Shown: positions 1,326-63,965 of the stretch, one piece after another
Layout: each line of letters opens with the position of its first letter
How positions within the stretch are numbered: the first letter of the stretch is position 1
Source: Octopus bimaculoides
Taxonomy: Eukaryota
Length of the DNA: 64,000 bases
Assembly (NCBI RefSeq): GCF_001194135.2
Contig: NC_068982.1
Span: forward strand, 65,705,891-65,769,890
Reading direction: 5' to 3'
Position numbers and translations under genes: made by a program
The notes under the pieces: model-generated
What the model was told of the DNA's origin: nothing
What the model saw: the letters and a program-made list of their open reading frames with translations, nothing else
Databases searched by the model: none

Positions 1326-1569
1326 TATTCATGTGATCAAAATATAATCGAGAATAATCTCCCTTGAACAACTATTTTTATTTGCATATTTATTTTCTGC
1401 ACTAATTCTTTTATTTGACCTCATGACATACTTGTTAATTAGGGTGGGAAAATAGCTGGAGCCAGAAGTATAGCCAGGTTCTAAAGTTAGCAGGTGCGCC
1501 GAGACACATACCAAACAACTTTTAACACATTTCTCATATTACGCGAACTATTTCATTAGTTATAATGTA

Positions 1570-3719: not shown

Positions 3720-3995
3720 AGAAGTGGTTGTTGTGTTTGTGCGTGTATGTTAGTGTGTGCGCGTGTGTGTGTGCGTGTGTGTCGGAGTGTATGAAAGGAG
3801 AAAGATGAAACTAAGAAAAAGGGAAATTTGAAATATGTGAAAATAAATAGATATAAGTACAATGAAGAGATAGATAGACAGATAGATAGAGAGAGAGAGA
3901 GACAGAGACAGAGAGAGAGGGGGGGAGAAATCTGAAGGAAAAGAAATTTGAGATGTTTGAAATCTACAGCCCTTTCTCTTTCTTTCTTTTTTCTC
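3720..3995. repeat. Compound (TG)n/(GATA)n/(GA)n microsatellite
   Basis: Directly visible simple repeats. Confidence 0.9.
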
Positions 3996-16600: not shown

Positions 16601-17299
16601 TTAGGCCGGTAAGCAATGAATTAAGGGAGTTTTGGCTGAAATTTCTTGCAGGTTGAGCAACTGCTTTGAAGCTCCTTCGTTGGCTAGAAAAGAGAATTGT
16701 TTTGAGTATGGAGCATTATATAATAACAGATTCTATAGTAAGTACAGGCAAAAAATCTAATTGTTAGTTTACAAACACTCATCTACCATTAAACACATCT
16801 GGAGAAATATGTGACACTACATGCTAGATATGTGTAAATTTTGAAGATTAGTTTGAATGGAAAATACTTAGGTATTTTAATAAGAGAGACCACAAAAGGA
16901 GTGATATAAATACAAATGTGAGAAATTTTAAGTAAAAAAGCTCAACAACCCACCAAAAAGGAAATGTTGGCTGACTAATCTGATGTTTGTTAAAGTTTTT
17001 ACAAGCAAAACATCTGTTATTGCAAAATTCAAGTTGATAGAGTGTATAGTTTGGAGATCACTCCAGGTTAAAATGCTACTTCTCTGCATTGAGAGGTCAT
17101 AGTTCCGGTACTACAGACATGTAGTTAGAATGTTACAGGAAATGCAAGATAGACTCTATAAGCTAAGCCCACTAGCAGGAGACTTATGAGTAGACCAAGT
17201 ACAAAAACAAATATCCACAGTATCAGTTTATCACATTCAGAAATCGATCTGAAAAATCTAATGTGGTGGTTTCTGATAGGACCATATAGGGGAAGTGCC

Positions 17300-25114: not shown

Positions 25115-25654
25115 NNNNNNNNNNNNNNNNNNNNNNNNNNNNNNNNNNNNNNNNNNNNNNNNNNNNNNNNNNNNNNNNNNNNNNNNNNNNNNNNNNNNNN
25201 NNNNNNNNNNNNNNNNNNNNNNNNNNNNNNNNNNNNNNNNNNNNNNNNNNNNNNNNNNNNNNNNNNNNNNNNNNNNNNNNNNNNNNNNNNNNNNNNNNNN
25301 NNNNNNNNNNNNNNNNNNNNNNNNNNNNNNNNNNNNNNNNNNNNNNNNNNNNNNNNNNNNNNNNNNNNNNNNNNNNNNNNNNNNNNNNNNNNNNNNNNNN
25401 NNNNNNNNNNNNNNNNNNNNNNNNNNNNNNNNNNNNNNNNNNNNNNNNNNNNNNNNNNNNNNNNNNNNNNNNNNNNNNNNNNNNNNNNNNNNNNNNNNNN
25501 NNNNNNNNNGTTCCCCTCGCAGACTTAAGGACACAGTAATTGTGTCAAGGCCGACAGGAAGCGGTCCAGCTTCCTAGGGCTAAACGGCAGTAGTGTATTC
25601 CCTTATTGGGATTGTCACATTAAGTTGACAATATACTACAACTATATATATACT

Positions 25655-26160: not shown

Positions 26161-26685
26161 TCTTGTCAAAATTTATAAAGTGCTTTTTTTTTTCTACAAT
26201 CTGNNNNNNNNNNNNNNNNNNNNNNNNNNNNNNNNNNNNNNNNNNNNNNNNNNNNNNNNNNNNNNNNNNNNNNNNNNNNNNNNNNNNNNNNNNNNNNNNN
26301 NNNNNNNNNNNNNNNNNNNNNNNNNNNNNNNNNNNNNNNNNNNNNNNNNNNNNNNNNNNNNNNNNNNNNNNNNNNNNNNNNNNNNNNNNNNNNNNNNNNN
26401 NNNNNNNNNNNNNNNNNNNNNNNNNNNNNNNNNNNNNNNNNNNNNNNNNNNNNNNNNNNNNNNNNNNNNNNNNNNNNNNNNNNNNNNNNNNNNNNNNNNN
26501 NNNNNNNNNNNNNNNNNNNNNNNNNNNNNNNNNNNNNNNNNNNNNNNNNNNNNNNNNNNNNNNNNNNNNNNNNNNNNNNNNNNNNNNNNNNNNNNNNNNN
26601 NNNNNNNNNNNNNNNNNNNNNNNNNNNNNNNNNNNNNNNNNNNNNNNNNNNNNNNNNNNNNNCGGAAGGATGAGGAGAGGTCCTT

Positions 26686-27560: not shown

Positions 27561-28755
27561 ACAAAGTCTTGGGTGGGGGGCACAAGTGTAGGTATAACTC
27601 AATTAGAATATTTTGAAAAAATAAGGAAACTGATAGTTAACCTTTATTTTGGACAGGGTAGAGATGGACTATATGTAATCTGAACCTCCCCCCCCCCCTT
27701 ATTTATTAATTTTTTTACGGAATCCCACGTTTTAGTCTATGGAGATTCCGATTCTGAAAAATAAAATTTTGAAAAATTTCAATTNNNNNNNNNNNNNNNN
27801 NNNNNNNNNNNNNNNNNNNNNNNNNNNNNNNNNNNNNNNNNNNNNNNNNNNNNNNNNNNNNNNNNNNNNNNNNNNNNNNNNNNNNNNNNNNNNNNNNNNN
27901 NNNNNNNNNNNNNNNNNNNNNNNNNNNNNNNNNNNNNNNNNNNNNNNNNNNNNNNNNNNNNNNNNNNNNNNNNNNNNNNNNNNNNNNNNNNNNNNNNNNN
28001 NNNNNNNNNNNNNNNNNNNNNNNNNNNNNNNNNNNNNNNNNNNNNNNNNNNNNNNNNNNNNNNNNNNNNNNNNNNNNNNNNNNNNNNNNNNNNNNNNNNN
28101 NNNNNNNNNNNNNNNNNNNNNNNNNNNNNNNNNNNNNNNNNNNNNNNNNNNNNNNNNNNNNNNNNNNNNNNNNNNNNNNNNNNNNNNNNNNNNNNNNNNN
28201 NNNNNNNNNNNNNNNNNNNNNNNNNNNNNNNNNNNNNNNNNNNNNNNNNNNNNNNNNNNNNNNNNNNNNNNNNNNNNNNNNNNNNNNNNNNNNNNNNNNN
28301 NNNNNNNNNNNNNNNNNNNNNNNNNNNNNNNNNNNNNNNNNNNNNNNNNNNNNNNNNNNNNNNNNNNNNNNNNNNNNNNNNNNNNNNNNNNNNNNNNNNN
28401 NNNNNNNNNNNNNNNNNNNNNNNNNNNNNNNNNNNNNNNNNNNNNNNNNNNNNNNNNNNNNNNNNNNNNNNNNNNNNNNNNNNNNNNNNNNNNNNNNNNN
28501 NNNNNNNNNNNNNNNNNNNNNNNNNNNNNNNNNNNNNNNNNNNNNNNNNNNNNNNNNNNNNNNNNNNNNNNNNNNNNNNNNNNNNNNNNNNNNNNNNNNN
28601 NNCTTGTCAGTGATTGGTTGAAATTATCGAAATAAGACAATTTTTTACATGAAATAAATTCGAATACAAAAATATTTTTCTGTTCTATAACACAAAATAG
28701 ATAAGTATACGAAGTTTGAAAGTCTTTCAGTACCAAAAACACTACGTAAAACATT

Positions 28756-32536: not shown

Positions 32537-33879
32537 ATGAAAACTACCCACCCTGCCATCTGTTTTAACTTTTTGTTGTTTTGTTTAATATATACATAGA
32601 TTATGCCTTCAAAAAAGAGAGCTTGCTGGGGAAAGAAAGCAACCGGTTTAAAAAGACAGCAACAGACTGCAGCAATTCACCACATTCCAGAAGCTACTTT
32701 GAACATAATGCAAAATGGTGCATCAACATCTACTGCTCAATTTGATAGAATTCTGGCAGAACTGTGTAGCAATAGATCGCCAGCAATTCTTTCATCAGAA
32801 ATTGCCGTCCTAGCTCCTGCGAAAAGGGATTACCCTGCTATGTATAATCAGGGCAGCACAAAAAGTTGTTTTGCACAAGCATTTGCATAGCCAATTAGAC
32901 GGATGAAATTTACGTACGCTTAATAATGTTACGCAAAACAGCCTTCAGACATTCCCTATTAATTGCATCGTCGTTTGAATTATGAACATATTTACATCAT
33001 AGGGGTTTTTACGTTGTAAGGCTTTCTTTTTTTAGTTGATTTTCACCTAGCAAGACTTATCGTAGATGGCGTAATAAGTCACACCCGGACAAAGTCGGGT
33101 TATACTGCTAGTAAACCAATAAATTAGAAGTTAACAGCTTTTAAATTTTGCAAATTTCTAGTAAGTTTAGCCGATCGTAAGCCAGNNNNNNNNNNNNNNN
33201 NNNNNNNNNNNNNNNNNNNNNNNNNNNNNNNNNNNNNNNNNNNNNNNNNNNNNNNNNNNNNNNNNNNNNNNNNNNNNNNNNNNNNNNNNNNNNNNNNNNN
33301 NNNNNNNNNNNNNNNNNNNNNNNNNNNNNNNNNNNNNNNNNNNNNNNNNNNNNNNNNNNNNNNNNNNNNNNNNNNNNNNNNNNNNNNNNNNNNNNNNNNN
33401 NNNNNNNNNNNNNNNNNNNNNNNNNNNNNNNNNNNNNNNNNNNNNNNNNNNNNNNNNNNNNNNNNNNNNNNNNNNNNNNNNNNNNNNNNNNNNNNNNNNN
33501 NNNNNNNNNNNNNNNNNNNNNNNNNNNNNNNNNNNNNNNNNNNNNNNNNNNNNNNNNNNNNNNNNNNNNNNNNNNNNNNNNNNNNNNNNNNNNNNNNTTT
33601 TTAAAATTTTATGGGAAAAAGTGACATATTTCCTGAGATTCAGCTTTGAAATGTGAAACTAACGGTTTAAGAAATACTCCCTAATTTAAATTTTATGAAT
33701 AGAATTAACCTAGTGTTTTCATAATCCAGCTATCTGGGTACTCGCGTATCCGCGCTAGCTAGTCGTGACTAGTCGATCCTACAACGACAAGCTAGAGCGG
33801 ATACGCAAAACATATATGAGGGTTTTTTTTAAAAACAAAGTAAATTTTTTTTTTTTGTTGAATCTTCCCCATCTTACTC

Positions 33880-34055: not shown

Positions 34056-34449
34056 AAAAACTGTAGTGTTTGTGAAGAGAGGTCACCGGAGATTGTGAGA
34101 CCTAGTAAACATTTGTACCATTTTTTTTAAAAGGTTTGTTATTGTTATTTAGACTCATGTTAGTTCTGACTGAACTAAAACCTTTTAGTCATGACAATAT
34201 CGTCATTTTTAAGACGGTAGGACATGATTCGGGGGACATGTAACTGTTATTTCTGGCAGGTCGACCAATCACAGAGTTTTCAGTTCATCGAAATAGTAAG
34301 TTTTGAGTGTATATTTATAAAATATTTGGCAACTTCTGACAAAAGGGAAAGAAGTTCACACAGAAATTCCAAATTGAAATATTTTTATTAACCCACTCTA
34401 TTTGTCAATAACAAAAATAAATCTAGAGAATCTTAGATAAAGCTGACAT

Positions 34450-34885
34450 TCTTCTTCTTGCCCTTAACCCCCCAACGCGGAGTATAGGCCACTTATAATT
34501 GAATTCCATGTCGCATAATTTCTCGCTTCTGTACTTTACCATGAATGTCCCCCTTTCTTCTAGTTCCTTTTGTGTTGATCTACGCCACGAGTTCATAGGC
34601 CTACCCCTCTTTCTATATCCATCCGGATTCCACTGTAAAGCACTTTTCGCTGCATTTTGGTGTGTCCTTTCTAATCGTGCTACCAATCCACTTCCACTTT
34701 TTCTTAAATATTTGCTCCCTAATCGAAACTTGATTCGTTCTTTGCCATAGCTCCATATTGCTTATGTGTTCGGGCCATCTGATTTTAAGTATACTACGCA
34801 AGCACCTGTTGATGAATGATTGTATTTGCTTATTTGACTTAACTGTTGTACTCCATGTCTCAGCCCCATACAATAACACCGCTTT
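34450..34885 (-). mobile_element. 5'-truncated RTE-clade LINE with (AAG)n tail
   Basis: LLYGAETW...INRCLRSILKIRWPEHISNMELWQRT...WIG...ALQWNPDGYRKRGRPMNSWRR. Confidence 0.85.
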
Positions 34886-34984
34886 TACGTAAGTAAATAT
34901 CGTTAATCGTTGTCATAAAAGCAAAGCATTCCACCAATATTCAATATAATACACACGTGCGCCAAAAAGAATCAAATAAATGTA

Positions 34985-35735: not shown

Positions 35736-35872
35736 ATGTCCAGATTTGTCGCAGTGGCCTTCCGCTCAGCATGTCGCCTTTTGAATACTTCTCGACCCCT
35801 GACCTCCAAACGTGACACACAGTACACGAGTGTAAGGAATTTCCTCGTAACACAATCAAAAACCAAGGACAA
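35736..35872 (+). CDS. FDX1: Mitochondrial ferredoxin (adrenodoxin) exon 1: mitochondrial presequence
   Basis: ATG 35736 MSRFVAVAFRSACRLLNTSRPLTSKRDTQYTSVRNFLVTQSKTKD, Arg/Ser-rich with almost no acidic residues. Ends AA|gtaagt (phase 2) and joins either exon 2 as K (KDK-ITIYF, cf. human FDX1 EDK-ITVHF). Confidence 0.85.
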
Positions 35873-40300: not shown

Positions 40301-42388
40301 CTGTTCTGGAACTGACTTATTTGGGTGACGTTTTTTGTGTTTGAGCCGCCCTGTTTATCTAGTTTCCGAGGAAGATGCTAGAGAAAGGTTGTCTGTCTAA
40401 TTTCAGCTGCTTAATTTACTGTGGCAAAGGAAAAAGGTAATAATTCCCACAGGCAACCTTCAACTTTTTCTATCCAAAGGGATTTTCTACCCAATATTTA
40501 CAAAGTATTATTCATAGCTCTATCTACTTTGAGCTCCACTGTTAGAAACAGATTATTAATGATTATATTGTTTCCCACCTTCTTCATTCATTAGGTACCA
40601 AAGTTTATACCTTCTAGGTAATATGCTTAGTTCCTGACTATCTTTCCCCACCCTCTCTCTTGCTCTCTCTCACCTAAGCTGTTTCCTTTATTCTAATATC
40701 TGTTGGTTAGAAAGAAACAAATAGATGGAAGGTGACAATTTGCAGGGATCAGCCAGAAATCTTAACTTTTTTTTTTTAAAAACACATTTACAAATAAATG
40801 CTTCTTATTTTACTTCAATCAATTTTTTCATTCTCCCTTTTTCTTTTGGGTGTCGGCTCTTTTGCTTTTCACATGAAACATGAAAACAACAGGTAAACTT
40901 TGGTAANNNNNNNNNNNNNNNNNNNNNNNNNNNNNNNNNNNNNNNNNNNNNNNNNNNNNNNNNNNNNNNNNNNNNNNNNNNNNNNNNNNNNNNNNNNNNN
41001 NNNNNNNNNNNNNNNNNNNNNNNNNNNNNNNNNNNNNNNNNNNNNNNNNNNNNNNNNNNNNNNNNNNNNNNNNNNNNNNNNNNNNNNNNNNNNNNNNNNN
41101 NNNNNNNNNNNNNNNNNNNNNNNNNNNNNNNNNNNNNNNNNNNNNNNNNNNNNNNNNNNNNNNNNNNNNNNNNNNNNNNNNNNNNNNNNNNNNNNNNNNN
41201 NNNNNNNNNNNNNNNNNNNNNNNNNNNNNNNNNNNNNTTGTGCGGGTGGCACATAAGACACCATTTCGAGCGTGGCCGTTTTCGTGCAGGTGACATGTAA
41301 AAGCACCCACTACACTCTGAGTGGTTGGTGTTAGGAAGGGCATCCAGCTGTAGAAACTCTGCCAAATTAGATTGGAGCCTGGTGTTGCCATCCGGTTTCA
41401 CCAGTCCTCAGTCAAATCGTCCAACCCATGCTAGCATGGAAGGCGGACGTTAAACGATGATGATGATATATATATATTTTAGTAACAGTTTGATTCAACT
41501 CCATATGACTTAAATTTTCATGGGCATGTAGACTACATCCCATTTCATCATATTCGACCCTTCTAATATCCCATGTGAGGGACACGTCCTACACACCCTT
41601 GAAATTTTGTTACACAGAGCTTAGTCAGACTGCTATTAAAAATATATATAACTGCTGCCAAAAGTGTTGAGTGCCACTTTTGTTGATCCACTCATTCATG
41701 TACTAAATATATAATATAGATAAACTGGCACAGCCAAGCACTTGGAAAACTTTCACAATTCCTGGGAAAACTTTGGGGACTAAGTATACTCTTTGAGAGC
41801 TGAGATGTTTGGATTCAATAAAACGAAATATAGTGATTGGCTTCATGATGATAATGTTGTGCTCAGCCATCTGCTAGAAATGAAAGACTTAAGCTTGCAA
41901 AGTCAATTGCAAAATCTGTATGGTTGGGAAGTTTATTTTATGTTCAATCCTATTGCATGTCACCTTGGGCAAACGTTTTTTACTATGGTACCACCAAAGT
42001 GTTGTGAGTGGATTTTGTAGATGGAAACAAAAATAAGTCCATGTGTGTGTGTGTGCATGTCCTTTTCTTGACATCATATGATTGTTATAAATGAGTCATA
42101 TTATACAAGTAGTGTCATTAATTTCTAATATGCTGCAAGAATTTGTCAAGCTATGCTCAGAAACCCGTGAAGATTGGCAGCAGGAAGGGCATGTAGCTGC
42201 AGATCTGCCTTAATAAACTGTGTCCATCTAATTCATGCAACTATTGAAAAGTGGACCTGAAAATGATGAGGAGGTAACTGTGCAATGAGAGTCGAGGAAA
42301 ATTCAAAACAAGTGGTAGTCAGATATCTCCCAGAAATTCAAATTCTGTACAATAGAAGACCTTAAATATGTTTCTTTGTGTGTGTGTG

Positions 42389-42424
<36 letters not shown>

Positions 42425-43447
42425 TATCATCATTTTACATCTGCTATCCTTAGGTTGGACAGTTTGAGAGGGTTGGAGGACCACATCTTGCTCCATTGTG
42501 TCAGTTTTTGTATGGTTTCTACAACTGGATGCTCTTCTTAATGTTAACTCCTTTATAGAGTTTACTGGGTGCAGTTTTGTGATATTAGCACTAACAAGAT
42601 CACCATGCAATCAGAAAGTTAAAGAGTATGCAAGGTGTTGAGAGGTTAAAGTATGATAGTCAGGAACAGGTTTGTTGTTGTAGAGGAGATACCCTACATT
42701 ATCTATGGGTGGGTGAGAGTATTTGGGGTGGAACATGGTGATGGTGAGTTGTCAGTGTATCCTCAGAAAATATGAAAGCAGAAACCATGGGGATAGAAGT
42801 TCAAGAAAAGTGTGTGTGTGTGTATACTTGTTGAACTTAAACTGGATTGTAGAAAGAAGAGTTAAAGTGAAATATCCAATTTATTTATGTATTATATTTA
42901 TTCATTCAGTTATAATTAAATGCCTGCAAATCCAATTATGTAATATGCATTATATAACAGGCATGGCTATATCATTTTTCTCATCCATGTCTATACATTG
43001 TTTAATTGTCACATGCATGTTGTTGAAACAATTTTAAACTATGGAAGAAAGTAATGCCAGCTACTCCATTCTTTACTTATTTTACACACACACATTAATA
43101 TATGCAAATAAAGTGTGTGTGGTGGAAGTCGAGTTAACTTGTGCCTGAGTACAACTACTTCTTGATACATGATAAATTTCTTGGATGTAACCATGGAAAT
43201 CAGCAAAGAGAGGACAATTACTAACCGTTGCCCAGTTCTGAAATTTAGCAAACTTTGTTTAAACTGCCTTTTCTATGTTTCTTAGAGTATTGACTATTAA
43301 GGCTGAAACTACTGCCATCTATTGAATGTATGTAGTATTATACACTTGACTACGTTACTGCAATTATTCACAGCTATTTAAAACCATATTTCATTGTACT
43401 ATTAGTGTTTAATATTTATTTTTATTGCTGATGCTGTTAACTCTTAG

Positions 43448-43554
43448 GATTACAATATATTTCATTGATCGAGATGGAGACCGTATTGCTGTGACTGCCA
43501 GTATTGATGAAACACTTCTTGATGTGGCTCTGAGGAATGATATTGACCTTGAAG
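43448..43554 (+). CDS. FDX1: Ferredoxin exon 2A (mutually exclusive; FDX2/Yah1-like DLEG loop)
   Basis: Acceptor gctgttaactcttag|G; 107 nt ITIYFIDRDGDRIAVTASIDETLLDVALRNDIDLE; donor G|gtattt; phase 2 in, phase 1 out; no stops. Gives a 155-aa protein. Confidence 0.85.
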
Positions 43555-43617
43555 GTATTTATCTATCGATTCAATTTGCAGCAAAAGCTATTTTTCTTCC
43601 CCCTTTTTGTGTTTCAG

Positions 43618-43730
43618 GGTAACCATATATTTTGTGACCAGTGATGGCAACAAAATTGCAACAGAGGCCAAAGTAAATAGCACTTTGTTGGACTCTATTA
43701 TTGACAACGACCTTGATTTTGATGGCTTCG
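43618..43730 (+). CDS. FDX1: Ferredoxin exon 2B (mutually exclusive; FDX1-type DFDGFG loop)
   Basis: Acceptor ttcttccccctttttgtgtttcag|G; 113 nt VTIYFVTSDGNKIATEAKVNSTLLDSIIDNDLDFDGF; donor G|gttagt; same phases as 2A; no stops. Gives a 157-aa protein. Confidence 0.9.
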
Positions 43731-45969
43731 GTTAGTGGTTTTCTATTTCTCTGCAGGAATATTTCATCTTCTCTCTAAATTCTCTCTTCTGTCTCAGTTT
43801 AATTTACCAAAATGTATTGCTTTATAGACATTTATTCTTTGTAACATAGTGGGATTTGAAAACTGCCATATTCTCTTATGGAGCTGTATTATTGAGTTTA
43901 TTCTTCTTTTATACGAACAATATGGCCAGATGGTTAAGAAATTTGCTTCACAACCATAATATCCCAAGTTCAGTCTCACTGCATAGTATCTTGGGAAAAT
44001 GTTGTTTTCTGTAACTTTCAAGTGATCCATGAGTGAAAATGAATAAGCAAAAACTGTATAGAAACTTAACCAGTGGATTGTACCTGTAATTTAAGAAAGC
44101 TTTATCTCACTCTGTCACCATGATTAAATCTGAAAATTATATATAGGGTACACGTGACTGTGGAATACTCAGCCATTTGCACATTAATTCAGGAGCAGGT
44201 AATTCAGTGCTCAAACAACTGAATCCTCACTGTCAAATAATGGAGTTCTACCTTCACTATTTCTCTTTGCTTACTTGTGTTGTGTTCAAGTAGGAATAAG
44301 TAGAATTCAGTCTTGTCTAGGACACAGTGCACTGCCAATGGTAAGATATAAATACTTAGTTCTTTAACTGGGAGGTGAATAACTTATTTAATTGGTTATT
44401 ACAACATCACTAAGGAATAATAATATGGGGTTATTCTGGTAAGTGTTTTCAGTGTTTAAATATTGTATAAAAATTCTCCATAAACCTCTTGTAAAAACTC
44501 TACATAAGTTTTAGATGATTACCATATTTGATGGCATGAAAGACGCATGAACATTAGATATACCCCAATTTCTGCAGGAAAAAAGTTTTCATGCATTAAC
44601 TCTTTAGCATTCAAGTCACTCTGTCAAATGTAATGCTCATTCATCCATAATGTTTGAATTAATTATCCATTATCTTGTAGCTTTGAGATTTCAATAATGT
44701 GATTGTTTATTTTTCAAATAATATTGTAGTGTAGGTGTGTGAGTGAAGGTATATGGCTTAGTGATTAAGGTATTCAGCTCATGATCATAAAGTTGTGAGT
44801 TCGATGACTGGTAGTACACTGTGTCCTTGAGCAAGATACTTTATTTCATGTTGCTTCAGTCCACTAAGCTGGAAAAAAATTGTAGTACCTATATTTCAAA
44901 AGGTCTGCCTTGTCACATCCTGTCATGCTGAATCTCCCTCAGAATTACATTAATGGTATGTGTGTCTGTGGAGTGCTCAGCCACTTGCACATTAATTTCA
45001 TGATCAAGTTGTTCCGCTGATCGGATCCCTTGTTGTCGTAACCAATGGAGTGCCAGTTAGTTTGTAGGTATGTATGAGATCAGATCTATCCAGTTTTAAC
45101 ATAGAACAAATAGGATACTTGAGCTGGATATGACCAATTTAAATGCTGAAGGGTTAAAGCATGTATTATAGGCCCAGCTTCATATATAGGACCTAGAATG
45201 ATGTTTTGAGACAATGTTTTTGAAAAAAAGTGTTTTATATGCTATCAAATATGGTAGTTGGCATAAGATTTAGATTAATATACTATTTGATGGCAGTGTT
45301 TCACATCTATAAACGATATCATACAAGTAAACAGATTTCAAAAAGCATCATATTCTTTTTCACTTGTGATAATTTAATGTGCAAAGTGGGTTTATATTTC
45401 ACTGCATATATTCTAATATTTTTTAATAAACCAGAATTTTTTATTAGTGCTGTGATATACAGGACTGATAAATATCATGGTGTGGATAATGTTCAGCACA
45501 TTTTGACAAATAGCTCTTTGTAGTTCATTCTAAGCTTGCATGTTCATTCCTGCATGACAGTTTATCTCTTAATGTGTCAACTGTTTTTCTCCAAGGAAAT
45601 TTAGTTTGAATTGGCAGAGCTTAAAAAAAGAAAACAATAAGTGCGGGAAAAGCCTGTTAAAATTTATCCAATGGAAAATTATATGCTTAACAAACCTTGA
45701 AATAAATACTCCAAACTCGATTCTAGTCACTACCTCCTGCAAACATGAAAATGTTCACCAATGAGGGAACCTGTAAGTGCTTTCCTAACATGTTAGAGAT
45801 AACTACTAAAGCTCCATCAAATCACTCCCAACCTTCTGAAGAAAAAATAGCACTTGCATACGATAATATAGTTTGTGATGCAATGTCTGATAATGAGTTT
45901 ATTGTAGCTGCTCAACCAGAGCTGGCCAGGGGTTAAGAACAACACTAAAACCATAGGTACTGAGACATA

Positions 45970-46110
45970 AACTTACATCTGTTTCCAACTTACATCTGTT
46001 TCCAACTTACATCTGTTTCCAACTTGCATCTGTTTCCAACTTACATCTGTTTCCAACTTACATCTGTTTCCAACTAACATCTGTTTCCAACTCACATCTG
46101 TTTCCAACTA
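45970..46110. repeat. 17-bp minisatellite, 8 copies (AACTTACATCTGTTTCC)
   Basis: Units start at 45970, 45987, 46004, 46021, 46038, 46055, 46072 and 46089; variants CTTGC, CTAAC and CTCAC. Confidence 0.95.
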
Positions 46111-47559
46111 ACCAACCTGACTACACATTCAGTTCCAACTTTGGCACAAAACCTGGTTCTTATGTTTATGTACTGTTCACTATTTCTGTGCAGAAAATTA
46201 ACCATCATGTTATTCTCTTTAAAATTCCCATCCCACGATTACCTCTCTCCAACTTTATATTGCTTTCTTAATTCTTTCAATCGTATTTAATCCTTTTCAT
46301 TATCTTATATCCAATATCAGATTCTTTAAGCAATAATCTACAAGTTCCCCTAAATCCCCAATTCCAATTTTCTTCATAAATTAATTCATCAAAATGAAGG
46401 AGGCAAACATCCCTGAGCTTTGTGTGCTCTCATAGACTGGTATTATTGAAATGCAATTTATGTTCTGCTCGAATATCTCTGAGTAGGTGTCTTTTGGGAA
46501 AATGTGAATTGGAAGAGAATTCCAAAAGTTGGCATTCTAGAAAGGAAGGACTGGTTAATGCAGGGTCTTTGAAATGAGACATTTTGAATAAATAAGAGCA
46601 TGCAAGATGAATGAAAGTAGTGTGCAGTTTTGTTTAGAGAAGCTGGGGCTTTTGAAATAGAGATTAGTGTGTTGGTGAGTGAATATTTGCCTATCATACA
46701 GATGTTTGTGTGTGCTTTAGAATGTTTGTATAACTGCAACGCCATCCCTGGTGCTGAAGTTATTGGTCTTACTAGATAGTTTTGTAGAGGGTCAGCAGTT
46801 GGTTGAAGCTAAAGTATTTTCCAAGCCAAAAGTGAAAAGCTGGTCTTCAAGATGCACTTTTAGCAATATTATGGCTGTGGGATCATTAAGAGAGAATACC
46901 AGTGATTGTGAGACCTTGCATTTGTAGGTACTCATCATTAACATCATCATCATTCAATGTCCATGTTCCATGCTGGCATGGTTAGGATAGTTTCACAGGA
47001 TCTGATGGGTCCAAGGACTGGATTGTGCATCACTGCCTACTTCTGCCTGGTTTCTAAAGCTGGATGCCCTTCCTAATACCAACCACTTTACAGTGTGTCC
47101 TACTTGTTTCACGCCAACAAAATTAATGAAGTCACCACCCACCTTGCAAGACTACAAATCCAGAGGGAGGTGGCTTTATCTTGATGTGGAGCTAAAATAT
47201 GAGAAGGATCCAGAGTAGAACAGGACTCCTGCTGTAAAGGGGTCATTAGGCTACTCACACTTTAGAGAAGAATGTATAGGGAAGTTGGGTGGTGCAAGAA
47301 ATACATAAAAAGTAATGGTGATGAGGCATCTGGGTAAACCCTCAGAATATGGGATGAGTAGATGTGAGGGCTGAAGAATTGGGGGTATGGGTGGAGGCTG
47401 CAAGAGTGAGTGAGAGTGATGGGAATGGGTGAGGCAGTGAATAAAATGAAGAATAAGTGTTGAGGGGATAAGTAGTGGAGATAGGGAGTAGTAGATGACA
47501 ACTGTTGATACTGGGTAGAGTTGAGTGGTGGATAGTTTTAATTGTGTATAGCCCAATAC

Positions 47560-48210
47560 TAGACACGGTGAGGTATGAGATTATTTCTTTATTGTATGCA
47601 GTGTTTGGGTCTTTGTGCTATTGAAAGAGACAAGTGTCATGTAATTGATTTTGAGGTTTCTGTTCCTGAAAGCAGCACAAGTTTGATATGAGGCATCTAG
47701 GTTGCATATAGAGGGTACTTCTGTACAGAAGGTTATGGATTAGGGAAGAATGAATGTTGAGAAGCAAGACATTACAGGGAGACAAGTGTAGTGGAGGACA
47801 TAACTAAACTTAAGACACACCAGGGTTGATAGTATGGGTCAGTGAGAGGCTAGTCAGCACACAGTGTTGTTATGATCTAACAGGAAGACTAGTCCAGGAG
47901 ATAAAAGATGGATGAAGCTCATAAATAGGCAGCTTATCTAGGTAATGCCAGACAAGGTCAAATATTTTGCTGATGTCAAGTACAACGCTGCTTTTGGTGA
48001 AGTTCTCAATTGCATGGAACTGGTATTCTGCAGCATAGGAAACCAGGTCCCTTGTAGATCAGGCTTTATGAAAGCTGTACTAGTGGTCATTGAAGAGGGA
48101 GGGAGACTTAAGGTATCGAAGACAGTGATAGTTAATTATTTTTTTAATGGCTTAATCAGAGGTGGAAGAGCTGCATCCATGATCATTTTTCAGCACCTCC
48201 AAAACTAGCA
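47560..48210 (-). mobile_element. Decayed LINE reverse transcriptase (Jockey/CR1 group)
   Basis: Minus strand reads ..VVLDISKIFDLVWH.., the RT ALDISKAFDRVWH motif; many stops. Confidence 0.6.
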
Positions 48211-49203
48211 GTAGGATGCCATTTACTTGTTGAAGAAAAAAAAAAAAGTATCAGCCATGCCAGCCAACATCTTGAATAGAAGAGATGAATCATTCTCCAC
48301 CTGCTTATATAGAAGAAAATATAGTCCTTCATCTTTGAAACATATCTCTTCACCTGATCTATTTGAATTATGAACATGATAGTTAGTTCCCTAAAATAAA
48401 CAATGACAATATGTAGAAAGTAATGCCATTTATACATGCATTTTTATCATTATCATCATATGTACATGCACCTAAGTTCATATTCGTATGTACTAATAAT
48501 ACTTTATTGGTGTGTTTATGTCCCCATAACTTAGCAGTTCGGCAAAAGAAACCAATAGAATAAGTACTATGCTTACAAAGAATAAGTCCTGGAGTTGATT
48601 GCTTTGCCTAAAAACCCTTTGAGGTGGTGCTCCAGCATGGTCACAGTCAAAATGACAAACAAGTAAAAGAATAAGAGAATATTAGCTTATGGGTGCCCCA
48701 ACTTGGCATATAGGACCCAGGGTGAATTGAGACATTTTTCTGGGAAAAAGTGTCTTGTATACCATCAAATATGGTATTGGTGGCTGACATGTAGAATATT
48801 CTTTTCTACACTAAGTACAAGGCCCGAAATTTTTGGAGAGGGGGGGGGCAGTTGATTAGATCAGTCCCAGTACACAACTGGGACTTAATTTATTGTTCCC
48901 GAAAGGATGAAAGGCAAAGCTGACCTCAGCAGAATTTGAACTAAACGTAAAGACAGATGAAATATCGCTAAGCATTTCATCCATCATGCTAACGTGCTGA
49001 CATGTAGAAATTAAGAGATATATGGCTTGCCTTTGTGTTCTTTCTGAATTGCAATTTCCTTGTGATATGGCACTTCTCCTTAAATTCTGAAATCATCTTC
49101 AAATGCAGCTTTTGTTGCAGCTTTCAGCATTTAAACTATGGTTGAAAATGTCTAATCTAAATATTTTAAGAGTTCTTTATTTAAGAGATGAAGAATTATG
49201 TAC

Positions 49204-49380
49204 ATTATTTACATTTGACAGATATTTGTCCTCATCTTGTTTGTTGTTAACACGTTTCGGCTGATATACCCAGGTTTGGAATTTCCCCATGACACCTGAT
49301 GAAGGCTGGCGGTATATCAGCTGAAATGTTGTGTTAACAACAAACAAGATGAGGACAAATATCAGTCAAATGTAAATAAT
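49204..49380. mobile_element. Palindromic PLE pLTR remnant with hammerhead-like core
   Basis: Arms 49204-49270 / 49311-49380 are inverted copies; CTGATGA (49296)-aggctg..cagct-GAAA (49323). Confidence 0.6.
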
Positions 49381-49609
49381 CTAAATATTTTAGTTACCTG
49401 AAAGTTGTTTTTTTTTTATGCCAGTTTATTGATGAGGTAGTTAATTGCTGTATCTTCAGTTTCATTTTTTTTCTTTTTCCTGATAGCATCAGAAGATATC
49501 ATTTTCAGCTTAATTGAATCTTGTTTTCAAAATCTTTCATGTTATATTTTAACAGAATGCTATATATATATATCATTATAGTGTTGTATAAGATTATTTT
49601 AAATTTCAT

Positions 49610-49920
49610 ATATGCATGGCTGTATGGTAAGATGCTTCTCAGCCACGTGATTCTTGTTTCAGTCCCACTGCGTGGCACCTTGGGCAAGTGTCTGTCTTCT
49701 ACTATAGCCTTGGGCCAAACAAAACTTTGTGAGTGGATTTAGTAGATGGAAACTGAAAGAAGCCCATATGTATATATATGTATGTATCTTTGTGTCTGTG
49801 TTTGTCCCCACCTCACTGCTTGTCAAAGGTGTTGCTGTGTTTACATCCCTGTAACTTAGCGGTTCGGTGAAAGGTACTGATAGAATAAGTACTAGTCTTA
49901 AAAAAATAAGTCCTGGGGTC

Positions 49921-49953
<33 letters not shown>

Positions 49954-50020
49954 GGCTAAAAAAACCCTTCAAGGCAGTACTCTAACATGGCTGCAGTCAA
50001 ATGACTGAAAAAACCGAAAA
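49610..50020 (+). mobile_element. Family-A SINE
   Basis: Head ..gtttcagtcccactgcgtggcaccttgggcaagtg; tail ..caaatgactgaaa. Confidence 0.8.
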
Positions 50021-50029
50021 GTCCTTCCA

Positions 50030-51420
50030 AGCCTGTTTCTGTTCTAATAGCCCTGTCAACAACATTGTTCCACCACCACGTTATTTTGGGTTGAGGGGGA
50101 CTTTGCACCATCCACAGATCTGGTCAGTGGCCCTCAGCAGGTTGTCCCGTAGAAACCTCCAGTTGTCTTCTACATTGTGTGAAGCTATATCCCCTTCGAG
50201 TAATAAGTCTCTAAATCTCTGTCCATTCGCAGGATCTTTGAGCTTCCAGACCCTTCTCCTCCATGCTGGTTGTCTTCTGGGCAACAACTTAGCTCTGATC
50301 CTGAAGTCACTAACTACTAGTTTGTGTTGCGGGGTACATTCTTCGCCTGGGAAGGTTTTGGCAGCCATCTTCCCCTTTTCCTGGTGAGGATGTAGTCAAT
50401 TTGGCTAGTGTGTCTGCCAGAACGGTAGGTAACTAGGTGACTGGCAGGTTTCCTGAACTTAGTATTGCAAACCATAAGTTCATTTGCATCACAGAACTCC
50501 AGCAGCCTGGCTCCCTCCTCATTGCGGGAACCAAAATCATAGCCTCCATGTACGCTATGGAAGCCCCCTGAATGTTGTCGAACATGTCCATTGAAGTCAC
50601 CAGCCACAAAGAGAAGGTCCCTGTCATTCGTCGACAAGGTCGTCTGCAAGAGGGTGTCATAAAATCAGTCTCTCTGTCCATTGGGTAGCACAGGCTGAGG
50701 GGCATAGGCCGAGATAATGGTTGCTAACCCATGGTGAAGGACTAATCTAATCTTAAGTATTCTATCGCATACTCTGGCTACCTCAATTACCTGATCCACC
50801 CATTTCTCCGCAAGAAGTATACCCACGCCCCCAACCTTGTCTGTGTTCCCTGCCCAGAAAATCTTGTACCTGTGTTCTTTGCCTGTGAGGAACCTAGTGG
50901 AACCTCCTTTCCACCTTACTTCTTGGAGGCAGCAGATATTGACACATCTCCTTTCAAGCGTCTCAACAATCTCACCAGACCTACCTTTCAGTGTGCTGAC
51001 GTTGAGAGTGCCAACCCTGAGGGTGTGGGAGGTATGGGCCCGTGAGACCCTGGGGCGGGGAACAGCAGCATCATGTACCTGAAAAGAAAGCTCACATTTT
51101 GCAGAATTCATAAACAATCAGTAGCCCTCATGTCAACCTCCATCCACTACACTATCATATTTTGCACTATATGATCACTACCTACATAGGAGGAGATAAA
51201 CCCTAAGTAGGGGTGGCGTGAAGCCTTTAGAAGTGTTCATGGGAGACGGCCAGGAACTTCCGTTACTGATGGAGAGGATAGGAACTTCCAGTACTGGTGG
51301 AGGGCGTGGGAGGGCGTATGCACCACTGGCATAGTGCTGCAAAGGTATTAAGGTCAAGTGGGGGAATTGGGGTGCATGCGCTAGTTTATAGTCCTGCCGA
51401 AGCAAGAGGTAATCGAAAGA
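50030..51420 (-). mobile_element. RTE LINE 5' half (APE endonuclease), frameshifted
   Basis: LRVGTLNVSTLKGRSGEIVETLERR..CCLQEVRWKG..GGVGILL..ISAYAPQ; AGDFNGHV; SQIDYILTRK. Confidence 0.9.
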
Positions 51421-52360
51421 GGGAGAAGGAGAGAGAGAGGGTTAGGGTTAGTGATCAGAATATGAGGGATAGAGAGAGAGAGAGAGAGAGAGATTCTTAT
51501 GGGATTTCTGTCACATAATTTAAAGAAACAGTAAATATTGAATGATAGTAATATAGAATAGAAAAATAAGAGTTTTTGGTCAGCTAATCTAAGACAGGAT
51601 TATAAAGATAAGTGACTGTGTGATAAAAGTTAAAATTGAATAATTTGAATAACTGAACGAATTTGACGACATAGTAATGGACAACAGAAATGAATTTGAC
51701 GACATGGTAATGAAACAAACAGAATAGTGAAAGCACTAAGTAAGGTGTTATGAATCAGCACATATCTTTACATTAGTGTTGTATAAGATTATTTGAGTAT
51801 TATTTTTCATTATCTTTCTTAACAATGCTAACTTAAGAGTAGCATATGGAATCAACATTGCAAACATGCAGATATAAGATGTCCACCATGTTGGCTCCAT
51901 TTGAATATCACTGTTTGATCAACACTGATGCTATGACATACAATCCTAATATTTATACCTACGAACTTATTTTCCTTTTGAAAATAATTTAGTGTTTGCT
52001 GAAAAACCTTAGGTGTCTTTACTTAACAGTTGATCAACTTCAGTTTAGCTACATTACTATGTCGTCTTACATACACACCATTTTGTTGGTGAGCTCCCTT
52101 GCTCTGCTGTTCTTGTATAGCACCAATGTAGGGGATTGGAAAATATTTGAACCAATATTCTATTTTCTGTGACTATTCTATTTTCTTTGGGATATGTTAC
52201 CTTAAAGACATGTGATTTCATTCTTAGACATTGCTTTATATTAGAGTATGTGTAGTCATCTTCTGCTAACTCTGGAGTACTCTTCCAGCTTTTGTCTTTG
52301 TTTGTTTTTTTTGCACATATATCAGTGAAATTTCTCATGTACTTTTGCTGTCTTTGTTAG

Positions 52361-52487
52361 GAGCTTGTGAAGGTACTATGGCCTGTTCCACTTGTCACGT
52401 AATATTACCCAAACACATATACAATGCTGAATTACCATCGGATGAAGAACAAGATTTATTAGATATGGCCTATGGATTAACAGATAC
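52361..52487 (+). CDS. FDX1: Ferredoxin exon 3 ([2Fe-2S] C-x5-C-x2-C)
   Basis: Acceptor cttttgctgtctttgttag|GA; 127 nt [41 protein letters not shown]; donor AC|gtaagt. Confidence 0.97.
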
Positions 52488-52720: not shown

Positions 52721-52817
52721 GTCTCGCCTTGGTTGTCAGGTTTATGTGACAGAGGATATGGACGGCGTTGAGATAAAAATTCCTACAGAAACAAATGATA
52801 TACGAGGATTTTCTTAG
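52721..52817 (+). CDS. FDX1: Ferredoxin exon 4 (fourth Cys, stop)
   Basis: Acceptor tttttgtctcattttgtag|G; SRLGCQVYVTEDMDGVEIKIPTETNDIRGFS*. The short C-terminus is FDX1-like (no FDX2 ..PKPH tail). Confidence 0.97.
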
Positions 52818-52864: not shown

Positions 52865-52870
52865 AATAAA
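52865..52870 (+). terminator. Probable polyadenylation signal of the ferredoxin gene
   Basis: AATAAA 48 nt after the stop codon. Confidence 0.55.
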
Positions 52871-55639: not shown

Positions 55640-57600
55640 TTATTGTTTACAGTGCTCAAGTGCACTACAAGTCATCAGAAAAGGTAACCTAAAGAGCATG
55701 TACAGTACACAGAATAATGTACAGAAAGTGAACAGTGAATGGGTCATTAAAAAAAACTGGGTAGGGGACGCTAAGTGTACTGTTGGTGAATTTTGGGAAG
55801 CATGGAAGTTTTGAAAGATGTCTTGACAGTTAACACCTGATGCAAGCAGTTTATTCCATGCTTCAGTAATTCTGAATATGAAAAGATGATTCCGAAAGTC
55901 ATGAATGCTGTGTTGTTTTTTGATTTTGTAAGTGTTAGACATGGAATTCAAAAAGGTACCCAAAGTTGTTGGAAAGATGGTGAATAATCTTGTGAGTGTC
56001 TACCAAGTTAGTTGCCAGACATCAGAGCTTTATTGTGTTCATGCACAGGGAAGCAAGACATTCAGGATATGGTAGATGCTTGACAGCTAGTATTCGTCTG
56101 GTTGCATGTTTCTGAAGTTTCCAGGAGATTAATGTGCTGAGCAAGATTGGGGTTCCAGACTAGTGATGCAAACTCCAAGTGTGGATGTACCATAGCCATG
56201 TACAGCTTTAAATAGATGGCTGGAGAGCAGCTGACAAAGGGTGATGTTAAAGCACCTTCAGCCTTCTTGACAATTTTAGAAATGAGGTTTGTCCAACACA
56301 TTGCTGTTGACAATAATGCCCAGGTCACATTCACCAACAAACTTCTTAAGATTAGTGTTATTGAGGGAGTGTAACAGTTGATTTTTTTCCTCTCAAAATG
56401 CATGGTGATGCACTTTCCCCAGCCAGCTTGTGTTGCTAATCAGTAATCTAAAGCTACATTGTTTCGAGGTCTGATAGCATATAGGATCTGTTCTTTTTAT
56501 TTCAAGATACATCTTGATGTCACCTGCATATTTCAACATTGTAACATTCTTCAAGTTGGCGTCTATGTCATTAACATATGCAACAAACAACAGTGGTCCA
56601 AGAACAGGTCCCTGTGGTACACCAGATGTCATTTCATAAGGTGCAGAATTTTGTCTTAGAACTGTGACTACCTACTTTTCGACCTAGGAGGAAGGACTTC
56701 AACTCATTACAGTGAGTTTTGCCTTGAGTCGTTTGTGTAGCACCGAATTGAAGGCTTTAACCGAGTCAAGATAAATAACATCACCATCAGTGATTCAGGT
56801 GATGTCTTCCAGAGACTTGATGAGTCTGCCACAGTAGCTGGAGTTGGGGATAAATCCAAATTGTGAGCATCAAATAAGTCTGTGAGAGTTCCAGAAGTTC
56901 TAGAGTGTTTCTCTGACACAGGACACCATCAGTTTGGTGGAACAGCTGGTAAGGTTGATGCTACAGTTATTAACAGGTGAGGTGCAATCAACCTTTTTGA
57001 ACAGGAATGACGCTGGCAATTTTCCACTGCTCTGGGTAACAGTTATTAAGACAGAACCCACCACATTTGAGAAGCAGATAAATAACACCATCAAGACCAG
57101 AAGAGATATAGTTGTGCTTATTCTTGAGGTAACAAAACAGCATTGCTGGTGTAAATTTCACAGATGTTATAGAATTTGATGTCAGAAAGATGGTACATTT
57201 TGATTTTCAATAGTAAACATCCCAAGGTAATTGAAGCCACCAGCTATGAAAACAAATGACTGTTTTCCTAGATGCAGTTCTGAAGATATCAAAACGTTAT
57301 GTGTCTTGGTAGCAGTTTTTTGTGGGGGGGGGGTATGGTAAACAACTCCAATTAGAGTTGTTGACATGTTTATAAATATATCACAGAAAAATGACTTTTG
57401 TTGTAATTGGCTTAAGTCATCGCAAGGAATTGCTGAAATGTTTGAACAAACGTAGACCATCACACCACTCCTATGACAATTAATGTGGTCTTTGCAAAAC
57501 AAGTTGTAACCAGCCATGTTAAAATCACCATCGCAAAGTTATAGAGTGTGCCCATGTTTCTGTGACTGCAATGTAATCGGGATCGATACTTTTGACATAG
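55640..57600 (-). mobile_element. Degenerate CR1 LINE (endonuclease, RT, 3' end)
   Basis: TSGVPQGPVLGPLLFVAYVNDI..KYAGDIK (56393-56632); LYMAMVHPHLEFASLVWNP; GGVMVYV/IGVVYHTP-type endonuclease remnants at 57182-57517. Confidence 0.85.
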
Positions 57601-60004: not shown

Positions 60005-60459
60005 NNNNNNNNNNNNNNNNNNNNNNNNNNNNNNNNNNNNNNNNNNNNNNNNNNNNNNNNNNNNNNNNNNNNNNNNNNNNNNNNNNNNNNNNNNNNNNNN
60101 NNNNNNNNNNNNNNNNNNNNNNNNNNNNNNNNNNNNNNNNNNNNNNNNNNNNNNNNNNNNNNNNNNNNNNNNNNNNNNNNNNNNNNNNNNNNNNNNNNNN
60201 NNNNNNNNNNNNNNNNNNNNNNNNNNNNNNNNNNNNNNNNNNNNNNNNNNNNNNNNNNNNNNNNNNNNNNNNNNNNNNNNNNNNNNNNNNNNNNNNNNNN
60301 NNNNNNNNNNNNNNNNNNNNNNNNNNNNNNNNNNNNNNNNNNNNNNNNNNNNNNNNNNNNNNNNNNNNNNNNNNNNNNNNNNNNNNNNNNNNNNNNNNNN
60401 NNNNNNNNNNNNNNNNNNNNNNNNNNNNNNNNNNNNNNNNNNNNNNNNNNNNNNNNNNN

Positions 60460-63283: not shown

Positions 63284-63965
63284 GTTAAGTTTATTCAATC
63301 TATGTACACATATGTTGTAGATGAGTCGATCATCTTTTTCCTTTGTTATATGATGTGTATATAAACTTGTCAACATGTTTATTAAGATAGTAAGAAGTGC
63401 AATGCTAATGGATTTTGCTTCCTTTTTTTTTTATCTGGATCACATAATTGTTGATTTATTCTTTATAGTTTGTATAGCATACAAGAGAGAAGCCATAATA
63501 AAAATTATTGNNNNNNNNNNNNNNNNNNNNNNNNNNNNNNNNNNNNNNNNNNNNNNNNNNNNNNNNNNNNNNNNNNNNNNNNNNNNNNNNNNNNNNNNNN
63601 NNNNNNNNNNNNNNNNNNNNNNNNNNNNNNNNNNNNNNNNNNNNNNNNNNNNNNNNNNNNNNNNNNNNNNNNNNNNNNNNNNNNNNNNNNNNNNNNNNNN
63701 NNNNNNNNNNNNNNNNNNNNNNNNNNNNNNNNNNNNNNNNNNNNNNNNNNNNNNNNNNNNNNNNNNNNNNNNNNNNNNNNNNNNNNNNNNNNNNNNNNNN
63801 NNNNNNNNNNNNNNNNNNNNNNNNNNNNNNNNNNNNNNNNNNNNNNNNNNNNNNNNNNNNNNNNNNNNNNNNNNNNNNNNNNNNNNNNNNNNNNNNNNNN
63901 NNNNNNNNNNNNNNNNNNNNNNNNNNNNNNNNNNNNNNNNNNNNNNNNNNNNNNNNNNNNNNNNN

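Follow-up and report, generated by a model that had tools for sequence, protein, structure and literature searches.

Mutually exclusive exons that arise by tandem duplication are a well-known device, of which exons 2 and 3 of alpha-tropomyosin form the classical pair; there, the upstream donor and the branch point are too near each other. FDX1, or adrenodoxin, is a well-known protein as well. In the literature that we searched, which was incomplete, we found no paper that links FDX1/adrenodoxin to mutually exclusive or duplicated exons. Here we describe the FDX1 gene in a stretch of 64,000 nucleotides from Octopus bimaculoides (assembly GCF_001194135.2, contig NC_068982.1, positions 65,705,891 to 65,769,890 of the forward strand; hereafter the window), in which the second coding exon occurs twice in tandem, as exons 2A and 2B. 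Isoforms A and B are the products with the one or the other. We consider, with a probability of roughly 65%, that this is a gene for a type-I mitochondrial [2Fe-2S] ferredoxin with ancient, mutually exclusive copies of exon 2. Both octopus isoforms are already annotated by the NCBI pipeline, as predictions. What is new beyond the first-pass annotation, a reading of the DNA letters alone, is the conservation of the exon pair in two phyla, the strong constraint on exon 2A and the view of exon 2A as a retained ancestral type-I form.

In the bovine complex of adrenodoxin with its reductase, Asp39 and Asp41 contact Lys27 and His28 of the reductase (PMC7593955, PMC9357085). The target specificity of human FDX1 and FDX2 is attributed to Glu133 and C-terminal residues in two papers that cite Schulz et al. 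2023 (PMC12855868 and PMC11618653), and the second of them describes the C-terminal segment of FDX2 as important for Fe-S biogenesis (PMC11618653). Isoform B of the octopus resembles vertebrate FDX1/adrenodoxin (3P1M, 1AYF, 1CJE) from end to end, with 52-54% identity, the motif LD(I/F)DGFGACEGT, ligands arranged as Cys-x5-Cys-x2-Cys...Cys, an acidic helix 3 and a short C-terminus of the (A/I)R type. Sturgeon, hemichordate, brachiopod, tick and octopus all have the junction between exons 2 and 3 within the same Gly codon. However, the FDX1 genes of the first four have a single exon 2 of the B type, whereas the octopus has the extra exon 2A; its use leaves out FG and alters about 60% of the first 36 residues of the mature protein. 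From the third to the fourth cysteine, the octopus protein is one residue shorter than vertebrate FDX1.

The gene lies on the plus strand and has four coding exons, with exon 2 in two versions (Table 1). Exon 1 is separated from exon 2A by about 7.6 kb, the intron between exon 2B and exon 3 spans 8.6 kb, and that between exons 3 and 4 has 233 nt. All splice sites are canonical, with acceptors AG after a pyrimidine-rich stretch and donors GT. Exon 2A has a weaker polypyrimidine tract at its acceptor and a weaker donor (AAG/gtattt), and exon 2B has a strong acceptor and the donor TCG/gttagt. In a six-frame translation, the plus strand reads IDLEG at 43542-43556, FDGFG at 43718-43732 and ACEGT at 52363-52377. 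The product with exon 2A is letter for letter the RefSeq protein XP_014769561.1 of O. bimaculoides, named 2Fe-2S ferredoxin isoform X2, and that with exon 2B is XP_014769560.1, adrenodoxin isoform X1. The exon 1 product is identical to the N-terminus of both. Its 45 residues are basic and hydroxylated, with the first acidic residue only at position 27, and they may be a mitochondrial presequence. In Octopus vulgaris, the model CAI9717705.1 (261 aa) begins 106 residues before the Met at which the other octopus models start.

Table 1. Features of the FDX1 locus, of the orthologous exon pairs and of the rest of the window (a slash marks an exon boundary; octopus positions count from the first letter of the window)
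Feature	Sequence	Position	Strand	Details
Exon 1, coding part	Octopus window	35736..35872	+	ATG start; N-terminal 45 residues MSRFVAVAF...QSKTKD; ends AA/ of a split Lys codon; donor gtaagt
Exon 2A	Octopus window	43448..43554	+	107 nt, phase 2 to 1; ctcttag/GATTAC...TTGAAG/gtattt; (K)ITIYFIDRDGDRIAVTASIDETLLDVALRNDIDLE(G); loop without FG
Intron between 2A and 2B	Octopus window	43555..43617	+	63 nt; final ~30 nt a polypyrimidine tract
Exon 2B	Octopus window	43618..43730	+	113 nt, phase 2 to 1; gtttcag/GGTAAC...GCTTCG/gttagt; (K)VTIYFVTSDGNKIATEAKVNSTLLDSIIDNDLDFDGF(G); adrenodoxin-type loop with FG insertion
Exon 3, common to both isoforms	Octopus window	52361..52487	+	first three cluster cysteines; acidic patch of helix 3
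Exon 4, coding part, common to both isoforms	Octopus window	52721..52817	+	SRLGCQVYVTEDMDGVEIKIPTETNDIRGFS, then stop TAG at 52815-52817; fourth cysteine and short type-I C-terminus without the FDX2 motif TRNFYVDGHxPKPH
Hexamer AATAAA, polyadenylation-signal-like	Octopus window	52865..52870	+	48 nt past the stop codon; read from the sequence
Block conserved with Argonauta hians	Octopus window	43395..43815	+	75% identity over 448 aligned columns; spans 2A and 2B
Exons 2A and 2B, Argonauta hians	L001	17486-17593 and 17674-17787
Exons 2A and 2B, Tubulanus polymorphus (nemertean)	L005	39520-39627 and 39926-40039
Exons 2A and 2B, Saccostrea cucullata (oyster)	L012	3553-3666 and 5259-5375
Open stretch matching Pfam Alpha_L_fucos	Octopus window	921-1328	-	E = 1.9e-40, profile positions 8-113; signal-peptide-like start
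Long open frames, clustered	Octopus window	17100-20200		weak, sub-threshold matches to integrase zinc-binding domains
Reverse transcriptase-like open frame	Octopus window	34426-34912	-	upstream of exon 1
Retroelement debris	Octopus window	50320-51117	-	inside the 8.6-kb FDX1 intron; endonuclease-reverse-transcriptase match (Exo_endo_phos_2, E = 7e-7) at 50320-50664, with an adjoining open frame
Reverse transcriptase-like open frame	Octopus window	56065-57538	-	downstream of FDX1
Runs of N (assembly gaps), seven, 331-818 nt	Octopus window	25115-25509, 26204-26662, 27785-28602, 33186-33597, 40907-41237, 60005-60459, 63511-63965		40907-41237 inside FDX1 intron 1; no gap touches any exon

Exons 2A and 2B are homologous, with 47% amino-acid identity and E = 7e-10 by tblastn within the window, and tblastn found no third copy of exon 2 in these 64 kb. 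At the DNA level there is one 15-nt match at 80% and almost no similarity otherwise, so the duplication is old. Both copies are 3n+2 nt long, are entered in phase 2 and are left in phase 1. When both are included, translation meets a stop codon directly after exon 2A; when both are skipped and exon 1 is joined to exon 3 (read by hand), the frame shifts to ...AAG AGC TTG TGA. Therefore, each mRNA needs exactly one of the two. The same length rule holds for 2A and 2B in Argonauta (107 and 113), Tubulanus (116 and 113) and Saccostrea (110 and 113). At the junction, the only difference in length between the isoforms is the two residues F-G. The octopus copies thus resemble other tandem-duplicated mutually exclusive exons in being adjacent, homologous, equal in phase and nearly equal in length, in breaking the frame when included together and, in octopods, in being separated by a very short intron of 63-81 nt. 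They differ in that the nemertean and oyster intron is long and in that no conserved competing RNA pairing was found.

Because the polypyrimidine tract takes up about 30 nt of the 63-nt octopus intron, the branch point is expected about 30 nt from the 2A donor. An octopod intron of this size, half of which is polypyrimidine tract, would probably be unspliceable, and the choice between the copies would then be sterically exclusive. Argonauta has 81 nt between the copies, Tubulanus 299 nt and Saccostrea about 1.6 kb, and with such long introns in the nemertean and the oyster, steric exclusion is not a general mechanism. We also considered competing RNA pairing. A segment of intron 1 (43213-43232) is complementary to the 2B donor region (43724-43743) over 20 nt at 75%, and this duplex reaches -25.4 kcal/mol in Octopus against -16.5 +/- 2.3 in 200 shuffles. 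However, the block conserved with Argonauta does not include this segment, and Argonauta has no comparable duplex (-17.7 against -14.7 +/- 2.0 in shuffles); as a conserved mechanism, the pairing was rejected.

Genomic DNA of Argonauta hians, Tubulanus polymorphus and Saccostrea cucullata also has 2A ahead of 2B, and the junction falls in the same Gly codon there (Table 1). RefSeq has A/B isoform pairs for Tubulanus, Saccostrea and Crassostrea angulata and A-type X2 isoforms for Physella and Biomphalaria; in all, its models include the A isoform for at least seven species. Erroneous read-through gene models with parts of both exons exist in Plakobranchus ocellatus, Acanthosepion (Sepia) pharaonis, Mytilus edulis and Batillaria attramentaria, and these imply the exon pair in a cuttlefish, a mussel and two gastropods. 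The first-pass annotation had suggested that the pair would matter in an animal with copper-based blood and optic-gland steroid signalling. The present data lend no support to such a link with haemocyanin or optic-gland steroids. It is not specific to the octopus, since bivalves, gastropods and a nemertean have the same pair, and a role particular to cephalopods is made less likely by the pair in oysters, snails and ribbon worms.

The block conserved between Octopus and Argonauta extends beyond the two exons, over about 50 nt upstream of 2A, with a GTTAAC motif that resembles a branch point, and over about 85 nt downstream of 2B. In the comparison of the two animals, exon 2A has 11 synonymous and 4 non-synonymous differences (dN/dS 0.07), exon 2B has 8.5 and 14.5 (dN/dS 0.38) and exon 4 has 10 and 6 (dN/dS 0.13); judged by these ratios, both exon 2 copies are under purifying selection. 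Uninterrupted A-type coding sequence occurs in short assembled contigs from 22 Logan runs of a cuttlefish close to A. pharaonis, presumably transcriptome data, and Logan also gave a B-type contig that resembles Crassostrea (P0142). Taken together, the low dN/dS, the conservation and the A-type cuttlefish contigs indicate that exon 2A is a functional coding exon and not a relic or an artefact.

What does the switch alter, and what does it spare? The junction sequences originally read for A and B are confirmed by the exon boundaries and the splicing to exon 3, and the switch does add or remove two residues, FG, ahead of the first cluster cysteine; 2A lacks them and 2B has them. Both isoforms share the putative presequence, the acidic helix-3 patch, the type-I C-terminus and all four cluster cysteines, which lie in exons 3 and 4, in a stretch that closes with RLGCQ. 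The first of these cysteines is encoded in exon 3, two residues past the junction, so the switch changes the residues immediately before it. Both products pass the Pfam Fer2 cut-off of 21 bits (A, 42.6; B, 29.2), and their best solved relatives are adrenodoxins, with E = 2e-33 for A and 2e-37 for B. The acidic patch of exon 3 aligns with TDEENDMLDL of adrenodoxin, with equivalents of Asp72, Glu73, Asp76 and Asp79 in bovine numbering. The position equivalent to Glu133 of FDX1 is Glu in both isoforms. The octopus protein ends in ...IPTETNDIRGFS, whereas type-II proteins end in ...ATRNFYVDGHxPKPH, and the conserved C-terminal segment of FDX2 (human ...TRNFYVDGHVPKPH) is absent from the shared exon 4. 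Since Glu133 and the C-terminus lie in shared exons and are of the FDX1 type, both isoforms are type-I ferredoxins by the known rules. The first-pass annotation had already called exons 3 and 4 FDX1-like; AYGLTD, one of the motifs it had cited for this, is not specific to FDX1, as it occurs in Yah1 and protist type-II proteins too.

The isoforms differ over the first 37 or so mature residues, which form strands beta1 and beta2 with their turn, helix 1 and the loop into the first cysteine. This stretch includes the equivalents of Asp39 and Asp41, and the FG bulge lies between them and the first cysteine. An AlphaFold model of isoform B has the adrenodoxin fold and matches human FDX1 and bovine adrenodoxin (1AYF) best, with TM 0.89 and rmsd 1.8 A. 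The switch would retune the environment of the cluster and the secondary docking contacts, that is, the redox potential, the coupling to the reductase and the preference among type-I acceptors; a conversion of the protein to FDX2 function is not expected. Most likely, the gene makes two type-I ferredoxins that differ in redox tuning, in secondary contacts with reductase or acceptors, or in both. The two may have different redox partners, as was first proposed.

A different view is that A and B are biochemically equivalent and that the pair is kept for regulation, such as control of dosage by splicing that depends on tissue or stage, or by neutral drift after duplication. We regard this as unlikely, although the shared cluster ligands, primary docking helix and C-terminus would favor it. 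So would amphioxus, in which exon 2 is duplicated as B/B with 79% identity; this means that duplicating exon 2 needs no change of the loop. Against equivalence, A and B each retain their own conserved residues from molluscs to nemerteans: DRDGD, Ala27 and LEG in A, and hydrophobic columns 27-28 and DG(F/Y)G in B. A neutral two-residue deletion that is not conserved across species, which the first-pass annotation had allowed for, does not agree with this, as the A/B difference is conserved across species. In addition, exon 2A is constrained more strongly than exon 2B, and the copies have nearly no nucleotide similarity left, so that they have long been apart, and yet neither has decayed. The two isoforms of Artemia, X1 and X2, which differ by FG alone, hint that FG toggling is used elsewhere.

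The DRDGD turn between beta1 and beta2 (window 43466-43480) is invariant or nearly so in 21 aligned A-type proteins, from sponges to octopus, whereas in B-type proteins the turn is variable and only the Gly is conserved. This constraint is specific to A and lies far in sequence from the FG loop.

It was also proposed at first that the switch toggles an FDX1-type against an FDX2/Yah1-type loop, and that isoform A is a natural FDX1/FDX2-like chimera, by which one gene would serve Fe-S assembly on NFS1-ISCU as well as the partners of FDX1. Part of this agrees with our comparison. The motifs cited for FDX1, FDX2 and Yah1 match the sequences, which before the first cysteine read NNLDIDGFGACEGT in bovine and human adrenodoxin, HGVDLEGACEAS in human FDX2 and HNLDMEGACGGS in yeast Yah1. 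In the length of the loop before the first cysteine (DLEGAC, without FG), isoform A is like human FDX2, Yah1 and bacterial ISC ferredoxins, and as a whole protein it scores 25 bits above B against human FDX2 (93 vs 68 bits) and 12 bits above B against Yah1 (105 vs 93 bits). A profile of four type-II ferredoxins, in a search that was not taxon-restricted, gave only vertebrate, protist or metagenomic FDX2 among the 120 matches listed; tblastn found no FDX2-like sequence elsewhere in the 64-kb window.

However, FDX2 is not the closest relative of isoform A overall. Human FDX1 gives 116 bits with A and 131 bits with B, and for A, FDX1 at 116-118 bits stands above FDX2 at 93. Against solved structures, exon 2B finds adrenodoxin (45 bits) but neither human FDX2 nor Yah1, exon 2A finds adrenodoxin (33 bits), human FDX2 (32) and Yah1 (23), and the shared exons 3-4 give 83, 56 and 78 bits for the same three. 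Isoform A also differs from human FDX2, Yah1 and bacterial ISC ferredoxin, taken as one group, in having no TRNFYVDGHxPKPH tail, Glu instead of Arg at the Glu133 equivalent, ACEGT instead of ACEAS, and no IAH motif in helix 1, a type-II signature.

The best relatives of isoform A beyond cephalopods include cnidarian proteins named adrenodoxin-like (Actinia, Rhopilema, Porites, Pocillopora, Sanderia) and those of the sponges Oopsacas and Halisarca, which combine an A-type front end, FIDRDGD...LLDVAKDNDIDLEGACEGT, with a type-I C-terminus (...DAR/DVR...). With the FDX1-type proteins of Actinia tenebrosa, Halisarca ('mitochondrial ferredoxin-1') and Oopsacas, exon 2A shares FIDRDGD, LLDVA and DIDLEG/ACEGT, the lack of FG and the splice position, and in Actinia even the donor (GAA G/gtat). 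Unlike the octopus gene, that of Actinia, the sole one of these read at the DNA level, has its A-type exon 2 without an alternative. In a 36-column alignment of exon 2 from which the FG columns were omitted, the 2A exons have a mean identity of 58% to non-bilaterian type-I exons, 40-44% to B-type exons and 39% to FDX2, Yah1 and bacterial sequences. For 2A, small HMMs of the separate groups discriminate only weakly. The columns with a consistent A/B difference are Asp7, Arg8, Asp11, Ala27, Glu35 and the absence of FG, and at every one of them 2A has the state common to the non-bilaterian type-I proteins and the type-II outgroup; this makes 2A the conservative copy and 2B the derived one. In column 28, 2A and 2B share a hydrophobic residue, whereas other groups have Lys or His, with Lys in the non-bilaterian type-I proteins, and this shared state fits a duplication after the split from cnidarians.

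FG is absent not only from isoform A, which reads DIDLEGAC, but also from FDX2, Yah1, bacterial ISC ferredoxins and the type-I proteins of cnidarians and sponges. By the column states, its absence is ancestral to the whole family and so not diagnostic of FDX2, and the F/Y-G insertion marks the bilaterian B form, not all type-I ferredoxins. Thus, we infer that exon 2A is a retained ancestral type-I form and exon 2B the derived adrenodoxin form. With such an origin of exon 2A, isoform A is not a chimera of FDX1 and FDX2 by descent. The name FDX2/Yah1-type holds for the length of the loop and for the shift of the whole protein toward FDX2 and Yah1, but exon 2A itself is nearest to the non-bilaterian type-I exons. 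A functional switch between FDX1 and FDX2 is less likely than two type-I forms. As the shared exons have the Glu133 equivalent and a short type-I C-terminus and lack the tail that, in the literature cited above, is decisive for FDX2 function, a chimera that serves both sets of partners seems improbable to us. We attach hardly any weight to a third alternative, a dead or decaying pseudo-exon 2A or an annotation artefact with only isoform B being made, for which the weaker 2A splice sites and the knowledge of 2A in the octopus from DNA and predicted models would speak, because against it stand the dN/dS of exon 2A, the frame and splice sites intact in Octopus and Argonauta, the intact orthologs in oyster and nemertean, the contigs from the cuttlefish runs and the RefSeq A isoforms.

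At the DNA level, the A/B pair was found in molluscs and one nemertean, and a single B-type exon 2 in Lingula (brachiopod), Ornithodoros (tick), Ptychodera (hemichordate) and Huso (sturgeon). Amphioxus has two B-type copies plus fragments, and the cnidarian Actinia has a single A-type exon 2 with the same junction as 2A. The B-type exons of deuterostomes and protostomes have the FG/YG insertion and other derived states in common, and exon 2A shows no sign of a past B-like state. On these grounds, the duplication most likely predates the protostome-deuterostome split, with both copies kept in molluscs and nemerteans and exon 2B as the sole form left in vertebrates, arthropods, a brachiopod and a hemichordate. 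The simplest history would be that exon 2 was duplicated once, in the bilaterian stem, and that several lineages then lost 2A.

We propose tentatively, and as a possibility that is clearly weaker than our view of the locus itself, a fuller scenario for this history. The duplication would have taken place in the bilaterian stem more than 500 My ago; the unchanged copy, 2A, would have kept the ancestral type-I duties, for example with lipoyl synthase and in heme a synthesis, and the copy that gained FG would have become the adrenodoxin form, which serves mitochondrial P450s. Molluscs and nemerteans would choose between the copies to this day through mutually exclusive splicing, vertebrates and insects would have kept the FG form alone, and the brine shrimp may toggle FG alone through two donors 6 nt apart. 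In Artemia franciscana, XP_065565087.1 and XP_065565088.1 are identical except for FG (DLEGFGACEGT vs DLEGACEGT). Two donor sites at that distance would give such a pair, and this may be a second, independent way to toggle the FG loop.

In Branchiostoma lanceolatum (OV696686.1; L014), the B-type copies of exon 2 lie at 3092-3205 and 3802-3915, and three short fragments of the 5' part of exon 2 lie upstream of them at 2772-2967. In a public model of 209 aa, the two copies are wrongly fused in frame. As in the octopus, it is exon 2 of FDX1 that has been duplicated in tandem; however, both amphioxus copies are of the B type with FG, and the loop is not toggled. Their type and their 79% identity indicate a separate and younger duplication. 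Radial_spoke_3 (RSPH3) stands head to head with FDX1 in Tubulanus (L005 1-2319) and Branchiostoma (L014 1-1306), a microsynteny between protostome and deuterostome, and tblastx detected no RSPH3-like sequence anywhere in the octopus window.

Several points weigh against the reading of the locus as an ancient, mutually exclusive pair with an ancestral A form. For the octopus itself, the evidence consists of isoforms predicted by RefSeq and not of octopus RNA. The idea of steric hindrance is limited to octopods and draws on vertebrate precedents. The AlphaFold model of isoform A was poor (pLDDT 52, from a 21-sequence alignment) and was not used. An exon-level phylogeny, which the first-pass annotation had suggested, was built by neighbor joining (NJ) from BLOSUM62 distances with 200 bootstraps on 36 columns of 42 exon 2 sequences. 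It recovered the A, B, type-II and non-bilaterian groups only loosely, with deep bootstraps below 35%, and the polarity of an ancestral A and a derived B therefore rests on character states and mean identities and not on topology. Furthermore, the pair is found in two phyla only, Mollusca and Nemertea, and a date in the bilaterian stem needs several independent losses of 2A. The deep dating uses few characters and the taxa read at the DNA level that are named above.

The other features of the window are given at the foot of Table 1. The open stretch near its left side, with its profile match and signal-peptide-like start, probably represents the first coding exon of a gene for alpha-L-fucosidase, the rest of which would lie beyond that side of the window. 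The reverse transcriptase-like frames on both sides of FDX1 and the cluster of long frames at 17-20 kb are, like the stretch inside the 8.6-kb intron, retroelement debris.

The strict specificity of the nearly identical folds of FDX1 and FDX2 for their partners is an active question in lipoylation, cuproptosis, heme a synthesis, steroidogenesis and Fe-S assembly. The octopus gene varies the beta-hairpin at the N-terminus, helix 1, the loop with the reductase contacts Asp39 and Asp41 and the FG bulge beside the cluster, and it holds Glu133 and the C-terminus constant. With both versions retained by selection in at least two phyla, there are two natural variants to be compared in midpoint potential, coupling to FDXR and preference among acceptors. 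The fused gene models of Plakobranchus, Acanthosepion pharaonis, Mytilus edulis, Batillaria and Branchiostoma lanceolatum need correction. If the bilaterian-stem scenario is true, the A/B pair would be a natural experiment that isolates the effects of the N-terminal third and of the FG loop on the redox potential of the ferredoxin and its choice of partners. On present evidence, the FG loop is a bilaterian novelty that arose beside the ancestral form without replacing it.

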